Shown in pieces: positions 43,626 to 53,600 of a stretch of DNA of 64,000 bases. A model generated the notes under the pieces. The model saw only the letters and a list, made by a program, of their open reading frames with translations, was not told where the DNA came from and ran no database searches. The stretch lies in assembly GCA_977016875.1 (NCBI GenBank), contig CDRNST010000229.1:124001-188000 (forward strand). Reading direction: 5' to 3'. Position 1 is the first letter of the stretch. The number at the start of each line of letters is the position of its first letter. The stretch is from Pavona decussata. Lineage: Eukaryota. Made by a program: the position numbers and the translations under genes.

Positions 43626-46045
43626 CGATTGATTTTTTTTAAATTCTTCCGCATGAACCTGGATCCCTTAAAATCTGTTGACTTCGACAAAATTTATTGA
43701 AGGCATAATAGTATTCTTTTTTTCCCCACGGTCAGTCGAGTTTCTTAAAAAAAGGTCGAGCTTAAGAATACGAACGGATTTCAAACGCGCACAAATTATA
43801 AGGGAACAGAGTTTTATTCCCGAATTTCGGAGCTGTTTTTGACTTTCCGAAATACTAGCTGGCCTTTTTTCGCACTTGAAACGAGTATTTACCCCTCCGC
43901 GAACAAAAGGGATTAGTTTTTCAGGGTAACAAAAGTTTGAGGTGATATTTCGCCAAAGAAATCGCTAGTTTTTCTTTGCAAATTAATCCGAAACTTTTGA
44001 GGCCAAGTGAGACAGGTAATGTTTTCCCAACAGATATTCCACTCAAAGGAACAGTAGGGTGTAGCGTGACGCTAGTTACGTCACGTCACGCATGGGGAGG
44101 AGAGGAGGAGTGCGTGACGAGCCAGAGAACGACAACGTAGGACTCCACACTAAAATTCTAATTACTTTCTGTGGCAGAATCAGCAAGCGAGACAGAGGAA
44201 CAATGGAACAAGAAACAGGAACTTAACGGCTTATCAGGAAAGGTTCTTACAAGAAAGGACATAGATGACAAATTACAGCGAATGAAAACTCAAGAACAGA
44301 CTTTAATCAAAAACTTAATAAAAGCCAGAAAAACCGAAGAAGAGCTTAAAAACAATCTACTTCGGTTATCTCGTGAGCTCCGTGCAAATGATCGAGTAAG
44401 ACATCAATCGAAACAATCAAACTTGCACTGGGATGATGCCAACTTGCCTACAGTCTTTGTTATTACTCCTACGTTTAAACGCTTTGTACAAAAAGCTGAG
44501 CTGACGCGCCTCTCTCAAGCCTTTAAACCCGTGAGAAAGCTTCACTGGATTGTTGTTGAAGATTCTGTGAACAAAACAGTCTTGGTGACCAATTTTCTGA
44601 GAAATTCAGGTCTGAAATACACGCATCTAAATGTGAGGACACCTGACACCTTGCGACGGCGTAAAAACGAAATACGACGACTCAAGCCCCGGGGGGTGAT
44701 ACAGAGGAACCTTGGTATTGAGTGGATAAGGAATAACATTGATCCTCACGAGACCCCTGGTGTGGTGTATTTTGCTGATGATGATAATACATATGACAGT
44801 CGAATATTTGATGAGGTTTGTAGTTGTTGTAGTTCCTCCAATACCCCAGGGATTTTAACGTGTACCGTGCCCCGGGCGCGTGGGATTTTTCCTGGTTTTT
44901 TTTTATGAATTGATGAATTATTAGATATTTCCTCTATAATCGTAGTTTGAATGCAGACCTCTATGCCTTTGAAGAAGCAAACAGAGATTCAAATGTATAA
45001 CATCACGCTTTTCCTGTTTTATCTTCAGATGCGCTGGATTCAAGGTGTCGGCGTTTGGCCAGTGGCCTTCACTGGGGGCGTCCGTTGGGCAGGTCCCCTA
45101 TGTAAAGCCGGTCGAGTTATTGGTTTCCATGCCAACTGGGGTCTATTTCGCCCTTTTCCAATAGACATGGCTGCTTTTGCTGTCAATATTAAAAAATTTC
45201 TAATCGATTTCCCTAAAGCTGAGTTTCTGGCACCGAAGAGGGCGGGAATGTTAGAATCTTCTTTGTTAGCTCAAATAACTACTGTTAAGGAGTTGGAACC
45301 TGTCACACCTAACTGCAGCAAGGTAAGTAAAAAGCACCAACCAGAAATTTTCCTCTTTTTAAAAATTCTATATCTCGATCCAATAGCTTTTTCTATTTAT
45401 TTCTTTCCGTTTACTACGTGAAACTCACTCATGTTTTCGGACCACACCCAGTTTAAGGGCACGTGTTACGCACCTGAATCCTAAGATCCAAACAATCAGC
45501 TACCAACCATAGGTTTTCCTGTATTGTTAGCGGTCTATCTAGGTGTATGGATATGTATGTTTCTCCTTTTTAACTCGTTCATGAAAACACTCCCCATTTC
45601 ATAAACGTTATGCTATATTGCCCTCTTAAATCACAACTGAGTAATATATTTTTTAAAGTTCTTATTATTTTCTGATCTTAGATACGCATTTGGGAAAGTT
45701 AAAAACTCACTGAATTTTCCATAACGTTTTGCATTTGTCCTCAACGCCGGTGGAATAGCTTCCGTAGGGTTCAATGGGGGCCTGGACACCAGGCAAGGGG
45801 GAAAACCGCTGAGTAATGTGACTTTGGGCAAGGCGATAAAAATGAACCTGCACTTAGTTTCCTCAGCGAATTGCATTTACGATTCTTGTAAGAACTCATA
45901 GAGTGTCCTTTTTGTAATGTCTTGGTTTTTATCTCACCAGGTATATGTATGGCATACTAGAACAGAAACCCCTAGAGACAGCATTTTAGGAGAACGACGG
46001 TTGATCAAACAAGGGGCACCCTCGGATAAGAACGTTGAGACATAA
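43039..46045 (+). CDS. GT43 beta-1,3-glucuronosyltransferase (GlcAT/B3GAT-like), paralogue B
   Basis: Exons 43039-43189 (TM anchor), 44178-44815, 45029-45322, 45941-46045. Same motifs and intron positions as paralogue A (GVVYFADDDNTY, RPFPIDMAAFA, GMLESSLL, VWHTRTE). Confidence 0.92.
43545..43633. repeat. (GATT)n microsatellite
   Basis: Directly visible tetranucleotide array. Confidence 0.95.
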
Positions 46046-47052
46046 CCGAACCACAACTGCGCAAAAACAGATATCCATGATAAAAGACATGAACTAGGCA
46101 AAGCGTTTGTTTGGAAATTTTGATTACCTAAGAAGATACCAAACCGATAATCCTAAGAAACGAGCTTTGTTTGTCTTGTATTGGTTGAATGGTATTTCTG
46201 TGTTCTTGTTTGTTTGTTCGTTCACGTTCCTTTCTGACAAACGGGGTGGGATTTTGTGTTTGTATACCATCATAGTAGATGTTTTAAAGTCAAAGTCAAA
46301 TGAGGTTGGCCAGTTTTAATCGTTTGAAGCTCATTTCATTCTTATAGCTTTTGTTATTATTCATTATTCAATTAATATACATGGCAATCCTATTGGTCAT
46401 TAAGTGCGGTCAGACAATGTGGACGAATGGACCAACACTGTGCTATACGTATTAAATTTTTAGCTTTTCTTGTGATCTTATCTATAAAATTGTGTAAAAT
46501 GTTATTTCGAAGTGCGCCCTCTCGATGAGGTTTTTTTTCTCTTAGGGCAAACTTCGACAATAAAAAATGTTTTAATAAAAAAAATTGTGAAGTATAATAT
46601 TCAATCAGTGAGAACCCAACTGCATTTCGTCCCTGAATTGTTCCAATGTTTCGTTTACTTTGCTGCTAAATGGTGGGAAAATGAGCGCGCGAAGCTTAAT
46701 GGGACAGAGCTTCCTCCTTTAAAAATCCCACAATGCCACGCCTGGGAACAAGACACAGCCATTTACATTTATTTTAGCTTTTATTGTAGCAAGCAAAAGT
46801 GACAAGCAACAACATACTAACAGAATCTAAACAAAAGAATAAGGAAACACTTATTTCTCAGATTTTAAATGTTAGAGTTCCAAGATCGAGGCTTCAAAAC
46901 AAAGAAAGCTACGCCTTTTCTCTGAGGCATGAACTTTTAAGGAAGTCATTGACAAGAGTGAACAGTTAGTGTATTGTTCATAGCCGAAGAAGTTAAATTC
47001 ATATAAATGCTTGGAAGGTGTTAATCGTTTTCGTGTAAAGTACGAACCGAGG

Positions 47053-48372
47053 TCACATCGCTAAAACTTTTCGTATAAGTTTATTCCAAAGTTTTCTGAT
47101 CCGGTTTCCCTTAGAGTTGAGATACTCTTCAATGTCTGACTCTTCATTCAACTGCGCATAATCTGCGGCATCTTTTCCATCTGCTGTAGTGAAGCTCACA
47201 TCAACTTTCAAGTCAACAAGCTTCTTCACAACTTGCATGTTGCCATGGATTGCTGCCATTTGCAGAGGAGTGAAGCCATCTGCGTCACAAGCATTGCTGT
47301 CTGCACCATGCTTTAATAGCATTTCAATGACTTCTAAGTCGCTGACATCGCAGGCATAATGAAGCGCTGTCTTGTCTTTCATTTCCGTGGTAACTTGAGC
47401 ATCAACTCTTGCCCGTACTTCTTCTCGTATGCTGTCAGGTGGACCTTCTCCCCAACCTGACGCAAGAACAGTACCAAAACTCGCCAAGTGTATCCTGCCT
47501 GCTTTGACACGTTTATCAAACAGCCCGGTTAAAACTTTCCTCACTTCAACATAGTTCCAGACCGTTTTCTCCTTTTTTGTGCCTCTTACAAGATATAACT
47601 TGTTTTTTGGATCATACGTATCTCTAATGTTCACATCTACATTGTTTTCAAGTAAAAGTTTGACAACGTGTTTGTGTTTGTTTTGAACTGCCAGATGAAG
47701 GGCAGTCTTGCCAGTGCTGCTCTGCAGTTGAACACCACAACCTGCCTCTATCAAAATCTGCGCTATATTAGCAAACCCCTTCATGGCTGCAATATGCAAT
47801 GCAGAGTCAAACGTTTTAACCCCAGTCTGGATAAGAAGGCGAACAGCCATGTAATTGTTCCAGTATGTTGCCAATATTAGAGACGTACATTGATCTTCTC
47901 TTTGAGCATTCGTGTCCGCGCCAAGGTCAATAAGTGTTTTCAGAAAGACACCCGAACAACGCGAGCTCGCCCACAGAAAAGGGGTGCGATTGCCTCTTGC
48001 GGCAACGTTGACATCGATACCGTTGTGCAACACAAGTTCAACGACCATTTCCGCATCATCGTTGTCTCCACATCGATGTAGATCTGTCAAAGATTTAACC
48101 TTCTCAACTTCTTCTTCATAAAATGTCCTTATATTGCTATGTACTTGTTCATCAAACGTGCTTAAGAGATCATCAGGAGTTTCAAGCGCAAAAATCCTTG
48201 CGTTATTTACTGTAGGTCCCAAAGTCATCTCTCTCAAAAAGTCGTTAACAAAGATGCCAGTGGTTACAACTGTGTCGTAATGTCCCTCGAAGACGGCGGC
48301 CTGCAGTAGATTGAAACCTGTTGTTTGGTCAACTTCTAGCACAGCATGTTTGCAAAGTGACATAAGGCTGAG
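47053..48372 (-). CDS. Duplicated terminal exon (ankyrin repeats + inserted unnamed domain); putative alternative last exon of the MIB-like gene
   Basis: Open 440-codon exon beginning at the phase-0 acceptor catag|CTCAGCCTT, paralogous over its whole length to 50622-51947. Confidence 0.8.
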   Translation of the reverse strand, partial: LSLMSLCKHAVLEVDQTTGFNLLQAAVFEGHYDTVVTTGIFVNDFLREMTLGPTVNNARIFALETPDDLLSTFDEQVHSNIRTFYEEEVEKVKSLTDLHRCGDNDDAEMVVELVLHNGIDVNVAARGNRTPFLWASSRCSGVFLKTLIDLGADTNAQREDQCTSLILATYWNNYMAVRLLIQTGVKTFDSALHIAAMKGFANIAQILIEAGCGVQLQSSTGKTALHLAVQNKHKHVVKLLLENNVDVNIRDTYDPKNKLYLVRGTKKEKTVWNYVEVRKVLTGLFDKRVKAGRIHLASFGTVLASGWGEGPPDSIREEVRARVDAQVTTEMKDKTALHYACDVSDLEVIEMLLKHGADSNACDADGFTPLQMAAIHGNMQVVKKLVDLKVDVSFTTADGKDAADYAQLNEESDIEEYLNSKGNRIRKLWNKLIRKVLAM

Positions 48373-48432
48373 CTATGTTTAAACAAAAAGAGAAAATACA
48401 TAATTAACGCTGTAGTTTTGGCAAAACAGTTC

Positions 48433-48455
48433 GATTGATTGATTGATTGATTGAC

Positions 48456-48514
<59 letters not shown>
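48433..48514. repeat. (GATT)n microsatellite
   Basis: Directly visible tetranucleotide array. Confidence 0.95.
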
Positions 48515-48515
<1 letters not shown>

Positions 48516-49018
48516 ATGTTGCACAGAAAAAAGGCTTTAGGTATTGGAGAAACAGTTTTCGTCGTTTGCAAATTTAAGATCTCACAAAATTTCGTCATTA
48601 CTGGCTTCAAACATCGACCTTACCATTTGCTTATAATGCATTGTTCGCTTATAATGCTTTCAACATTTAACGCAGGGTCCAAAAGGGGAAGTCGTTGGAG
48701 CCCGGTCCAATTGTTCAGAAATCATCCTGGGTTAACGTGAACTTTAATTTGACTTTAATCACTAAGCAAAAAAGATTTTTCCAAAAGAATTTTGTCTTGC
48801 AGTTTTAATTTGACAAAGAATTTTTTTTTTCACCGTTAGCTTAAAATTTGCTTTTAAAAACATTTCTTAAGAGCAAGATGAAAACCTAGGTTAAGGTGTA
48901 ATTGTGGATTTGCTATAATCGGTTTTCCAGCCAACCGGCCTCGGAACCCTACTTAAATCTTAACTTGATATATCCGCTTGATTTTTTATATTCAAACGTA
49001 TCAATTTCTTAGTCCCAT

Positions 49019-49359
49019 TAGACTGTTCACAGTCACCCTATTTTTCCGTGGGACTCTCGAGACCGGTAGGCTTCGATGGAGCTGCCGCCATCTTGGTTTG
49101 TAAAAGCAAGCGCGATCTGAGGAGAGTGACTAAACTACCGAGGGGAGGGGAGCGGAGTTGGGAGGCGACGGGAAAAATAGAAAAATATTTTTTCGCTTCC
49201 TCTCCCCGACTATACTAACACCCACTCCCGCTCCCCTCGGTAGTTTAGACACTCTCCCCAGATCGCGCTCGCTTTTACAAACCAAGATGGCGGCGATTCC
49301 ATCGAAGCGTACCGGTCTCGAGAATCCCACGGAAAAACAGGGGGATTGTGAACAGTCTA
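49019..49359. mobile_element. Long-TIR MITE (TAGACT...AGTCTA)
   Basis: About 135-bp imperfect inverted arms, including gccgccatcttggtttgtaaaagc / gcttttacaaaccaagatggcggc. Confidence 0.88.
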
Positions 49360-50621
49360 CAGTCCCATGTACATGCCTTCAACTAGAGGCTGCCTGACCG
49401 AATGACTAGCACGTTGGACTTAAAATTCACCCCCTGCGGCCTTAAGTCTCGCTATGACCACTAGCTGGAGTTAATTCACGTTGATAACGTTGATAGCTAC
49501 TGCATACCAGCAGTGCAAATGAGGTCTTTCCGGACCAAAGTGTTTTTATTTTCGACCTTAAAATCCACACAGGACGTATTGTGCAAGTCATTAAACTCAT
49601 CCAACGTGCTCGTTAAACACCCTTGAAACAAGAGTACAACTTTCTTCAAGAAATGGTATCATGTTCTTATGCTTGTGCTTATTTCTGCGTCTTTTGGCCG
49701 CACTTGCAAACCACGATAAAGAAAGCATAACAGCAACTACAGAGGAGAAAAAAGTACTTTTCTCGTGTTAATGCTACGGTGTATTAAGTCTGATGCAGCC
49801 CTTGTGTTTAATTTGTTTCTGGTTATTTGAGTGCAGTGTCTGTAAGCTACTTTGCAGCATTAAGTGCACATCCACATAGACAACGTATTCAATGTTTGAT
49901 AGACTAGTGCNNNNNNNNNNNNNNNNNNNNNNNNNNNNNNNNNNNNNNNNNNNNNNNNNNNNNNNNNNNNNNNNNNNNNNNNNNNNNNNNNNNNNNNNNN
50001 NNNNNNNNNNNNNNNNNNNNNNNNNNNNNNNNNNNNNNNNNNNNNNNNNNNNNNNNNNNNNNNNNNNNNNNNNNNNNNNNNNNNNNNNNNNNNNNNNNNN
50101 NNNNNNNNNNNNNNNNNNNNNNNNNNNNNNNNNNNNNNNNNNNNNGGTTTGTGGCAACCCAAAGGCTAGTGTGGACCTGCCAGAAACTAAAAAAACTACT
50201 TAAATATATGTACAAGTCTAAAGAAATTTCAAGAACTTAGAAATATAAAAAATCCGTTTACTTTGATGTTATCACACAGGCCTCCTTTTCGAATTGAATA
50301 CGATCTAATGTCCTTGAGGCCTGCCTAAGTTTTTGTTTGAAAAGCTGTAGGGAGGAAGCATCCTTGATGGCTTTAGGTAGCAAATTCCAGACAATGGGCC
50401 CTCTGGGCCCAATTGCTTTAAAAGTGTCCAATAGTCAGAACTTAAACAACGAAATCCATGCTCTGTCTCTGAAATGATAGTTCTTAAAGTCACTCATTGA
50501 GAATGTGAAAAGGTATCTGCATTGTCCACGATAGCAACAATCTCATATCATTTTTTTCACTTAACGTGAAGCGGTATCAGCAACAAGGCTATGTAAAGTA
50601 GTAGCGCTGATGATTACATTG

Positions 50622-53600
50622 TTAACATTTTCTTGAAAAAATATTCACAAATTTTCTAAACGAACTTCTCTTAGACTTGAGATACTCTTCAATTTCCGAC
50701 TCTTTGTTCATTTGTGCATAATCGGCTGCATCTTTTCCATCTGCTGTAGTCAAACTGACATCAACTTTCAGCTCAACAAGCTTTTTCACAACTTGCATGT
50801 TACCATGGATCGCTGCCAAGTGCAGAGAAGTGAAACCATCACCATCGCGGGCATTGATGTCAGCCCCGTGTTCTACCAAGAGTTTGATGACTTCTTCATC
50901 GCCCACTTTACAGGCAATATGTAGTGCTGTTTTGTTTTTCCTCTCTGCGGTAGGTTTATCGTCAACTATAAGAATTTCTTTTTGTTTGTTGGCTGGTGGA
51001 TCTTCTCCCCATCCTGAAGCAAGAACAGTGCCAAAATTAGCCACGTCTATGCTGCCATCTTTCGTCTTCTTGTGGAACAATCCGGATGTAGCCTTCTTTA
51101 CCTCAACGTAATGCCAGGCCCGTTTTCCCTTGTCTTTGCCACGTACTAGAAATATATTGTCTTTTCGTTGGTACTTATCACGGATGCACGTATCAGCCTT
51201 GCTTTCAAGCAAAGTTTTGACAAGATGTTTGTGTCTGTTTTGAACTGCCAGATGAAGTGGAGTTATTCCACTGTTGCTTTGCAAATTAATATTGGAGCCG
51301 GCTTCTATCAAAAGCTTTGTGATGTTAACAAATCCTTCCCTGGCGGAGATGTGCAGCGCCGAGTAACCCTCATCTTGGATGTAGTCTGTACCAACTCCAG
51401 CCTGGACAAGAAAGTGTACAGCCATGTAGTTATTCCAGTAAGTTGCCATTATTAGAGGCGTACATTGGTCTTCTCTTTGAGCGTTCGTATCAGCTCCAAG
51501 ATCAATAAGTGTTTTAATGAAAACACCTGAACAACGCAGACTCGCCCACAGTAAAGGTGTTCGATTGCCCATTGCAGCAATGTTGACATCCATACCGTGA
51601 TTCAATACGAGTTCCACGGCCTTTTCTGCATCATTTTTGTCTCCGCATCGGTGTAGCTCTGCCAAGGTCCCATACTTCTGTAATGTCTCTTCATAAAGTT
51701 CCTTTATCTTGGCATGGTGCCGCTTTTTAAACGTCGAAAAGATATCACAGGCAGTCTTTGAGGGCGAAATCTTAGCGTTATTTGCGGTTGATTCGAAATT
51801 CATCTCTCTCGGAAAGTTATCAAGAAAGATGTTAAGAGTTGTTACGGTGGCATAAATTCCCTCATAGACACTGGCTTGGAGCAGATTGAATCCCGAGACT
51901 GGGTCAGCTGCTAAAACAGCCATTTTGGAAAGACATATAAGGCTGGGCTATGATGAAAAAAGAAAACATGCTATTATTTAGTTTTATGAGCCAGTTCCGA
52001 GAAAACCTAAATTTACAGTCAACATTTCTCTTGACGTTTTGCTGAAAATGATAGGGTATTTTCTAATTTATTCCAAGCTTGGTTTTGTAAGAAATGTAAT
52101 GATGTAGTCTCTAAAGAATAACCAGGCAAAGATAATCTATTCACTAGGTACTTAATCTCGTACCCAGATCTTCCACGGTCACATTTCCAAACCTGCAGTG
52201 AGACCTGGGTGCAAGATTAGTGTGTATCTAACTATGAATGCCTCACCGGTTGTTGAAAACTGGGAGTTGCACCATGCCTCTTGAGAATTTGTATGATCGG
52301 TTGGTGATTATGGCGTTCAGCTTTCTGCAGAGCTGTTTTCTGAAACTGAGGGGCAGAAATAATCCAATTTAGATAGGGGAGGAATGGAAGAAAGAAGAGG
52401 GAGGTTGACTTTAATTTATGGTATTAACCGTAAACCTTGAGCTCATTACAAATCCAATCCAAGATGATATGACGGTGTATATTTTTTTTGTGAAAAAATG
52501 GTCCATTTTAATGAAAAATGATTATTGTTCCAGAAAATCCAGTTTTCTTTGCAATTTTTAGATTGAAGTCCTAGAATTTTGCCAAGAATAGCGTTACCTA
52601 AGCTTAACCTAGCTTCTTGGTGTGTTCGCTTGTCGTGCACTTGTCGTTTTGCCAGTGATAAGAACCTCTACAACGTCGACGGCCGACAGTGAAAGAAAAT
52701 GACGAAGACACCTATTGTTTCTGATAACACAAGAGGCCTTGTATTGGGTGCCAAGCATTGATTGGACAGTTAAACATGTTTATGGGTGGCATTGGTTTGT
52801 TTTACGAGAGCTATTTTGAAGTGATGGTTTTTTTCAGAAGGTGAAATTAAAAGGACTAAAATTTGTTAGCTTTTCATCAAATGCTCAAGAATGGGGGGAG
52901 AGTAGGCTAACTTACATTCAAACAAGCTGTATAGAAAGATTTGATAATTGTGAAAATGTTTTCCTTGGAAGCCATTAGCATGACCATGCAATCGAAAACC
53001 CTGACATGTTTTTTCTTTTGTGTTTTGGCTTAAAGCACAAAATTGCAGAAACAGAAAAACCGCTTTAACCATTGGAACATCAAGAATGCAAAAAAGAATT
53101 GGCATGGTGATCTGTGTTGAAAACTCCTCCTTTAGTTATTTTTTTAGCAAATTGTTTTATGCTTACTCTATCTGTGGCGTTGACATCTGCACCGTGCTCT
53201 AATAACAGATTAACAACAGATTCCTGTCCGTACCAAGCAGCCAAATGGAGAGGAGTCAACGAAAACTGGAAAAAAAATGTTAATGGCTCGATAAGAAGGA
53301 TGGAATTTCCCGGTGTTGAAATAGACAGAATAATGTGACATAATGCATCAAAATATGAATAGATAAATAAATCTACCTTGTTTAGAGTATAAAGCTTTCG
53401 CTGTTAACATCAAACAAGCAATCAAAAAATGATAATAACTACTATTAACAGAAAAAAATACCTTATCTCTTTGGTTTACATCTTCCCCATTATCAAGAAG
53501 CACTTGAACAGCCTCCAACTGCCCAGCAATTGCTTCCTCATGAAGTGCTTTTCTAGACTTCTGAAACCGATAACGTGACATAAAAACGATTTGTTTATTT

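Follow-up and report, generated by a model that had tools for sequence, protein, structure and literature searches.

The subject of this analysis is a minus-strand gene of the stony coral Pavona decussata, found in a window of 64,000 nt (GenBank assembly GCA_977016875.1, contig CDRNST010000229.1, positions 124,001 to 188,000 of the forward strand, numbered here from 1), which appears to end in either of two large, homologous last exons. Its head is encoded at 59324 to 62111 on the minus strand (approximate bounds, set by open frame) by three separate exons that carry a MIB_HERC2, a ZZ, and a second MIB_HERC2 domain, with Pfam E-values of 5.5e-18, 2.1e-6, and 1.3e-14, respectively, an arrangement referred to below as the MZM head. 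An 81-codon linker exon follows, in which Pfam found no family (no dedicated REP model was run), and then come three 99-nt ankyrin exons in phase 0, at 53560-53462, 53265-53167, and 52345-52247, all on the minus strand, the first two of which are 97 to 100% identical in a related taxon (locus L014). The third is the shared upstream exon. Its last codon is complete, and the GT donor at 52246-52245 serves both of the tail exons that lie downstream. The proximal one, exon B (50622 to 51947, minus strand), is an open frame of 441 codons and a TAA stop, and the distal one, exon A (47053 to 48372, minus strand), is an open frame of 439 codons and a TGA stop. We put the probability at roughly 90% that this is one coral gene with two alternative last exons, which arose by tandem duplication of the 1.3-kb terminal exon alone. 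The two proteins would very probably share their head and differ in a tail of about 440 residues, or about half of the protein length.

The two tails are clearly homologous and clearly distinct. Their proteins are 61% identical over 440 columns in BLASTP, with 75% positives. Two indels separate them, one of 6 residues in an ankyrin loop and one of a single residue, and at the C terminus, where the ends themselves differ, their lengths are 3 residues apart. At the DNA level, the homology amounts to 72% identity over 1,333 nt, beginning 17 nt 5' of the acceptors and stopping about 20 to 30 nt short of the stop codons. The motif "catag" stands directly 5' of both exons, both are in phase 0 relative to the 99-nt exon at 52345-52247, and that exon ends on a complete codon followed by GT. 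An initial annotation, made from the letters of the window, had described two stop-free exons of about 1.32 kb (48372-47053 and 51947-50622) with homologous phase-0 acceptors, diverged in amino acids and offset by a short in-frame indel, and this description was borne out in its coordinates, strand, and frames. In both tails, Pfam recognizes only ankyrin-repeat families, and a search of the organism's own genome found each exon in a single copy.

Both exons are joined to the same upstream exon in public sequencing runs. Contigs from four runs, which represent three samples and four studies at about 140 million letters each, were mapped to positions 46800-52400. Sequenced as DNA, 140 million letters would cover the 602-Mb genome only about 0.2-fold, yet each holds 56 to 68% of the sampled words, with 33 to 68% for those of the stretch, so the runs must be RNA. 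Contigs of all four runs contain the joint 51947|52247, which removes the 299-nt intron of isoform B (51948 to 52246), and also the joint 48372|52247, which removes the 3,874-nt intron of isoform A (48373 to 52246), in which exon B, the 3' untranslated region (UTR) of B, and the spacer are included. Either intron reads GT..AG on the minus strand, that is, CT..AC on the plus strand. Because both joints land at 52247, a single donor feeds both tail exons. This was the proposal of the initial annotation, and the two junctions on which it turned, 52247>51947 and 52247>48372, are thus present in every run. Since each exon occurs only once in the assembly, a processed copy cannot explain the joints. 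The short side of each joint measures 29 letters, the length expected of k=31 de Bruijn unitigs at the point where a shared exon leads into two isoforms. In each run, the contig with the first letters of exon A closes with 29 nt of the shared exon, so that the path assembled at that acceptor is the spliced one. The shared-exon contig (1,243 nt in run X1) stops exactly at 52247, and its loose end matches the 3' end of the ankyrin exon before it. From the acceptor of exon A, the RNA contigs extend through 46800. The distal exon, which might have proved never to be transcribed, is both transcribed and spliced. Within each run, contig depths of exons A and B are comparable in magnitude, a measure that cannot rank the isoforms. 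Among the contigs, which drop rare forms and do not show whole molecules, no joint connects exon A to a point within or downstream of exon B.

The pair of exons is conserved in other taxa. In the gap-free locus L014, the order is MZM head, ankyrin exons, exon B, 1.7 kb of spacer, exon A, and a convergent glycosyltransferase-43 (GT43) gene. In a further gap-free locus, L013, the contig begins at exon B and continues with 1.8 kb of spacer, exon A, and the GT43 gene. The readable acceptors are conserved, both of them in L014 and that of exon A in L013, where the acceptor of exon B falls at the contig end, and the acceptor of exon A is accompanied by a conserved polypyrimidine tract in three taxa. 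Orthologues of exon A in L014 and L013 are 95% and 87% identical to it, and those of exon B 87.5% and 84%. In trees, the A-type and B-type sequences fall into separate clades with full support, and that of type A also includes a fourth, more distant exon (L018). The latter comes from an unspliced Logan contig, so it contributes sequence and no splice evidence for another species.

The spacers also show what was duplicated. Neither the L014 nor the L013 spacer contains a copy of a head exon, and a tblastn search of the readable spacer in the window (48373-50621, E up to 10) likewise matched no head exon and returned weak generic ankyrin matches only, all of which lie inside exons A and B, in agreement with the initial annotation, which had seen no upstream-exon copies there. 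An assembly gap (N, 49911 to 50145) interrupts this non-coding spacer and touches neither exon. It adjoins a fragment of a dispersed repeat, a transposon, at 50146 to 50405 on the minus strand within the 3' UTR of B, which has at least 40 copies elsewhere in the genome at 78 to 97% identity, all with the same query start position, and which is missing from the orthologous spacers of L014 and L013. In those two loci, the sequences homologous to 50621-50411 and 49910-49360 are only about 20 nt apart, and the gap therefore lies in a lineage-specific transposon insertion. The suspicion that it might hide the upstream exons of a separate paralogue is not borne out by the sister spacers or by its position beside the transposon. 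Ten paralogous tails of the same genome were compared, and in nine of them a third-ankyrin exon of their own lies no more than 1.5 kb upstream. Exon A lacks one, which is consistent with duplication of only the last exon.

A single-tailed relative is provided by Desmophyllum pertusum (L017), an outgroup that has the same MZM head followed by one tail, which is nearer to exon B (59%) than to exon A (52%). In the public annotation of this locus (GCA_029204205.1, L017 positions 2516-11311), head and tail are two genes, one of 467 residues for the head and another of 436 residues for the tail, the latter called "Ankyrin repeat, SAM and basic leucine zipper", and the splice evidence presented here suggests that the two models are one gene. 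A related assembly (L015) has two tails as well, 7.5 kb apart; an LTR retrotransposon with reverse transcriptase, RNase H, and integrase lies between them (L015 positions 3142-7069) and stretches the spacer to this length. Dating of the duplication against L015 yields a polytomy. In approximately unbiased (AU) tests, positional orthology (p = 0.30 and 0.08) is not rejected, and neither is a clade of A with B (support 57/83).

Selection has held both frames open. Between the window and L014, there is not a single indel in either exon, while the rate in flanking non-coding DNA, 0.0116 indel events per site, predicts about 15 in 1,326 nt (P about 2e-7), so the frames must be kept by selection. 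Comparison of the two exons with each other gives a dN of 0.25, a dS of 0.81, and a dN/dS of 0.31. Two highly similar blocks (alignment columns 111-180 and 361-420) were considered as products of gene conversion, and this was rejected, because dS there is as high as elsewhere; with dS even along the exon, the similarity of these blocks reflects constraint. Orthologues of exon A show dN/dS values of 0.19 to 0.26, and those of exon B show 0.38 to 0.44 in the older comparisons. The suggestion in the initial annotation that both exons are under selection is thus upheld by the missing indels and the low ratio between the copies. Its worry that the distal exon might have a dN/dS near 1 does not apply to exon A, although a qualification attaches to the proximal exon B.

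Several points weigh against reading the locus as one gene with two functional last exons. The 299-nt intron and parts of the spacer also lie under contigs, at lower depth, and these could be pre-mRNA, DNA carry-over, or a transcript that starts in the spacer. The contigs carry no transcript ends, poly(A) sites, strand, or relative abundance, neither tail can be traced through the unitigs as far back as the 5' end of the gene, and the run records themselves only guess RNA. Finally, the dN/dS of exon B is about 1.2 between the window and L014, that is, on the youngest branches, and protein-level constraint on this exon is weak. The synonymous divergence between window and L014 is 0.053 for exon B, less than half of the 0.122 found for exon A and below the 0.088 of intron and spacer. 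This low value could be due to chance or to selection on silent sites, and it inflates the ratio. The 299-nt intron itself is 8.3% diverged from its L014 orthologue.

It is in this light that exon B might be seen as losing its function and being replaced by exon A, with its presence in RNA a residue of former use. Since the split of the window and L014, exon B has accumulated 11 synonymous and 40 replacement changes and exon A 29 and 15 (Fisher p = 2e-5), and the listed variants between RNA contigs and assembly show the same tilt, with 14 replacement and 6 silent in B and 2 and 4 in A. A decaying exon would nevertheless be expected to look different: neither the three taxa nor the RNA variants show a stop or an indel in exon B, its total divergence from L014 (0.061) stays below the non-coding rate (0.088), its older branches evolved under the constraint given above, it is spliced in every run, and the single tail of the outgroup is the closer to B. 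We regard such a turnover as unlikely. An excess of fixed replacements in B, sought with a McDonald-Kreitman-type comparison, was not found (14:6 among variants versus 40:11 fixed), and positive selection on B is therefore not demonstrated. In sum, exon A is conserved, and exon B is either weakly constrained or diversifying.

A second alternative is that two separate genes are present, in which case exon A would be an intronless or nearly intronless paralogue with its own promoter in the spacer, and its joint to 52247 a minor read-through chimera. Each exon does have an in-frame ATG near its start (at 48363 in exon A), gene callers report the exons as stand-alone proteins of 433 and 436 residues, the Desmophyllum annotation likewise makes the tail a gene of its own, and the contigs over parts of the spacer could be taken for such a transcript. 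However, the spacer contigs have about the depth of those over the 299-nt intron, as pre-mRNA would give, and exon A begins in all four runs with a contig that ends in the shared exon, at an acceptor and polypyrimidine tract that three taxa have conserved. The head-like exon that nearly all paralogues possess is missing upstream of A. Two genes are for these reasons very unlikely, and the 433- and 436-residue gene models are probably wrong. An assembly artefact, either a haplotype duplicated in error or a repeat that collapsed near the gap, might be suspected from the gap and the transposon fragments between the copies, but it is refuted by their mere 72% identity in DNA, by the same pair in two independently assembled, gap-free loci of related taxa, and by separate RNA contigs for each exon.

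If the locus is a single gene with two alternative last exons, the choice between them would be made as follows. Transcription meets the proximal acceptor at 51947 first, and where this is used, the mRNA would end downstream of exon B. Where the proximal acceptor and the poly(A) site of B are passed over, the donor would pair with the distal acceptor at 48372, and exon B together with its 3' UTR would be removed within the 3,874-nt intron. The outcome may thus be a competition between proximal splicing with polyadenylation on the one hand and distal splicing on the other. Candidate poly(A) signals follow the stops of both exons, and cleavage is predicted shortly after 49812 for isoform B and after 46773 for isoform A. 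For isoform A, two AATAAA hexamers lie at 46768 to 46785 on the minus strand, 268 and 280 nt past the stop. For isoform B, an ATTAAA at 49807 to 49812 on the minus strand lies beyond the transposon insertion, at the position orthologous to the hexamers of the sister loci, ATTAAA in L014 and AATAAA in L013, each 329 nt past the stop of B. This proposal follows the standard scheme for alternative last exons, in which terminal exons that look mutually exclusive are chosen via alternative cleavage and polyadenylation (PMC5740500).

The consequences for the protein can be framed by analogy. The head of Mind bomb binds the tails of Notch ligands, and the MZM head described here may do the same, while the two tails of the coral gene would bind different partners. 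At 76 positions, each type keeps one residue across three taxa, and this residue differs between A and B. Most of these positions belong to the N-terminal region, the middle repeats, the insert described below, or the C-terminal helix; such type-specific residues are what a different partner specificity would look like. One could go further and suppose a division of roles, with A as a conserved "housekeeping" tail for partner binding and B as a fast-evolving, polymorphic tail under diversifying selection. We consider this improbable at present. If it were true, a single head of the Notch-ligand type would be aimed at fixed or variable partners through the choice of last exon, for example in immunity or symbiosis, and the locus would be a small ankyrin-based analogue of the lola-type loci discussed below.

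In the AlphaFold2 model of the exon A tail (pLDDT 89.5), a helical N-terminal region of about 100 residues leads into ankyrin repeats, which are broken by a 70-residue alpha/beta insert before the repeats resume and the tail closes with a long C-terminal helix. The domain layout of exon B is the same. The insert, which interrupts the ankyrin array at residues 255-324 of exon A (47401-47610 in the window; 50958-51167 in exon B; both minus strand), has the topology beta-hairpin, helix, strand, helix, and is kept family-wide with the pattern LVRG...W.YV...FG.VL.SGWG..PP. Neither the insert nor the N-terminal 110 residues gave a credible match in Pfam (E up to 10) or the ESM Atlas, and in a Foldseek comparison of the exon A model with the PDB, generic ankyrin and designed ankyrin repeat protein (DARPin) structures were the only matches, with none to the insert.

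Other features of the region can be mentioned briefly. An inverted-repeat insertion resembling a miniature inverted-repeat transposable element (MITE), with palindromic arms, occupies 49019 to 49359 of the spacer and is missing from L014 and L013. Its word depth reaches several hundred in the RNA runs, and copies of this element must therefore be widely transcribed. A (CAAT)n microsatellite of about 24 units (48424 to 48522, minus strand) lies 50 nt upstream of the acceptor of exon A and cuts the reads; the block at 48515-48373 is 96.6% identical to L014. In L013, L014, and L015, exon A is followed by a convergent GT43 gene, which lies on the opposite strand, and by synteny one is expected in the window at about 44000-46100 on the plus strand. 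The tails belong to a large, clustered coral gene family. In the P. decussata genome, these large tail exons have over 30 paralogues, clustered on contigs C251 (about 1.03-2.12 Mb) and C170 (about 0.02-0.62 Mb), whose open frames span 300 to 1,230 codons. The ten that were examined (L003-L012) share one conserved "cag" acceptor and start with xSLKxL. Among named corals, relatives of the tail occur in Desmophyllum, Stylophora, and Porites.

Among the related known systems is Mind bomb (MIB1/MIB2), which has the same N-terminal MIB_HERC2-ZZ-MIB_HERC2 arrangement followed by ankyrin repeats. Unlike Mind bomb, both tails of the coral gene are without a RING finger, as Pfam gives ankyrin families only and both frames end in a stop, and no family was detected in the linker at the position of Mind bomb's REP region. 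Despite its head, the gene thus cannot be filed as a Mind bomb ligase. In its downstream half, it resembles the coral genes that combine three 99-nt ankyrin exons with a large tail exon, with which it shares the exon order, the conserved acceptor, and a tail that starts with xSLxxL. An example is Stylophora pistillata P0085, annotated as PP6 ankyrin-subunit-C-like, in which three ankyrin exons are followed by a tail starting PSLKSL. Members of that family normally have one third-ankyrin exon for each tail and a different N terminus, whereas here two tails depend on one donor and the head is MZM; exon B has both the conserved acceptor and a third-ankyrin exon of its own, and exon A the acceptor only.

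In the mode of its isoforms, the locus resembles genes with tandem-duplicated exons, since it has homologous tandem exons with the same acceptor phase and one shared upstream donor. In such genes, only one copy enters a given mRNA. The exchanged unit differs from the internal cassettes in being very large, at about 440 codons, and in being the last exon, and its 61% identity makes the copies far more diverged than the usual internal mutually exclusive exons. Tandem-duplicated exons are treated in PMC9013439 and PMC9741552, and the latter describes such events as rare and mostly ancient. A search of the full-text literature yielded general work on duplicated exons only and no paper on this gene or on coral MZM-ankyrin genes.

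The Drosophila loci lola, mod(mdg4), and broad offer a parallel for a constant N-terminal module that is combined with one of several duplicated, diverged C-terminal exons, each encoding a domain that recognizes a partner or target. They encode BTB and zinc-finger transcription factors with many tails, and some employ trans-splicing. The coral gene is unrelated to them, has two ankyrin-repeat tails, and needs nothing beyond ordinary cis-splicing. What it would add is a RING-less, Mind-bomb-like coral gene that makes two proteins differing over half of their length, and a clean natural case of how a duplicated last exon becomes alternative, with copies that evolve at unequal rates, sister taxa that retain both, and an outgroup with a single tail. 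Alternative last exons that stem from tandem exon duplication are a known kind of event, and no new kind of mechanism is involved; set beside the systems above, the locus stands out by the size of the unit exchanged, its conservation, and the different rates at which its two copies evolve.

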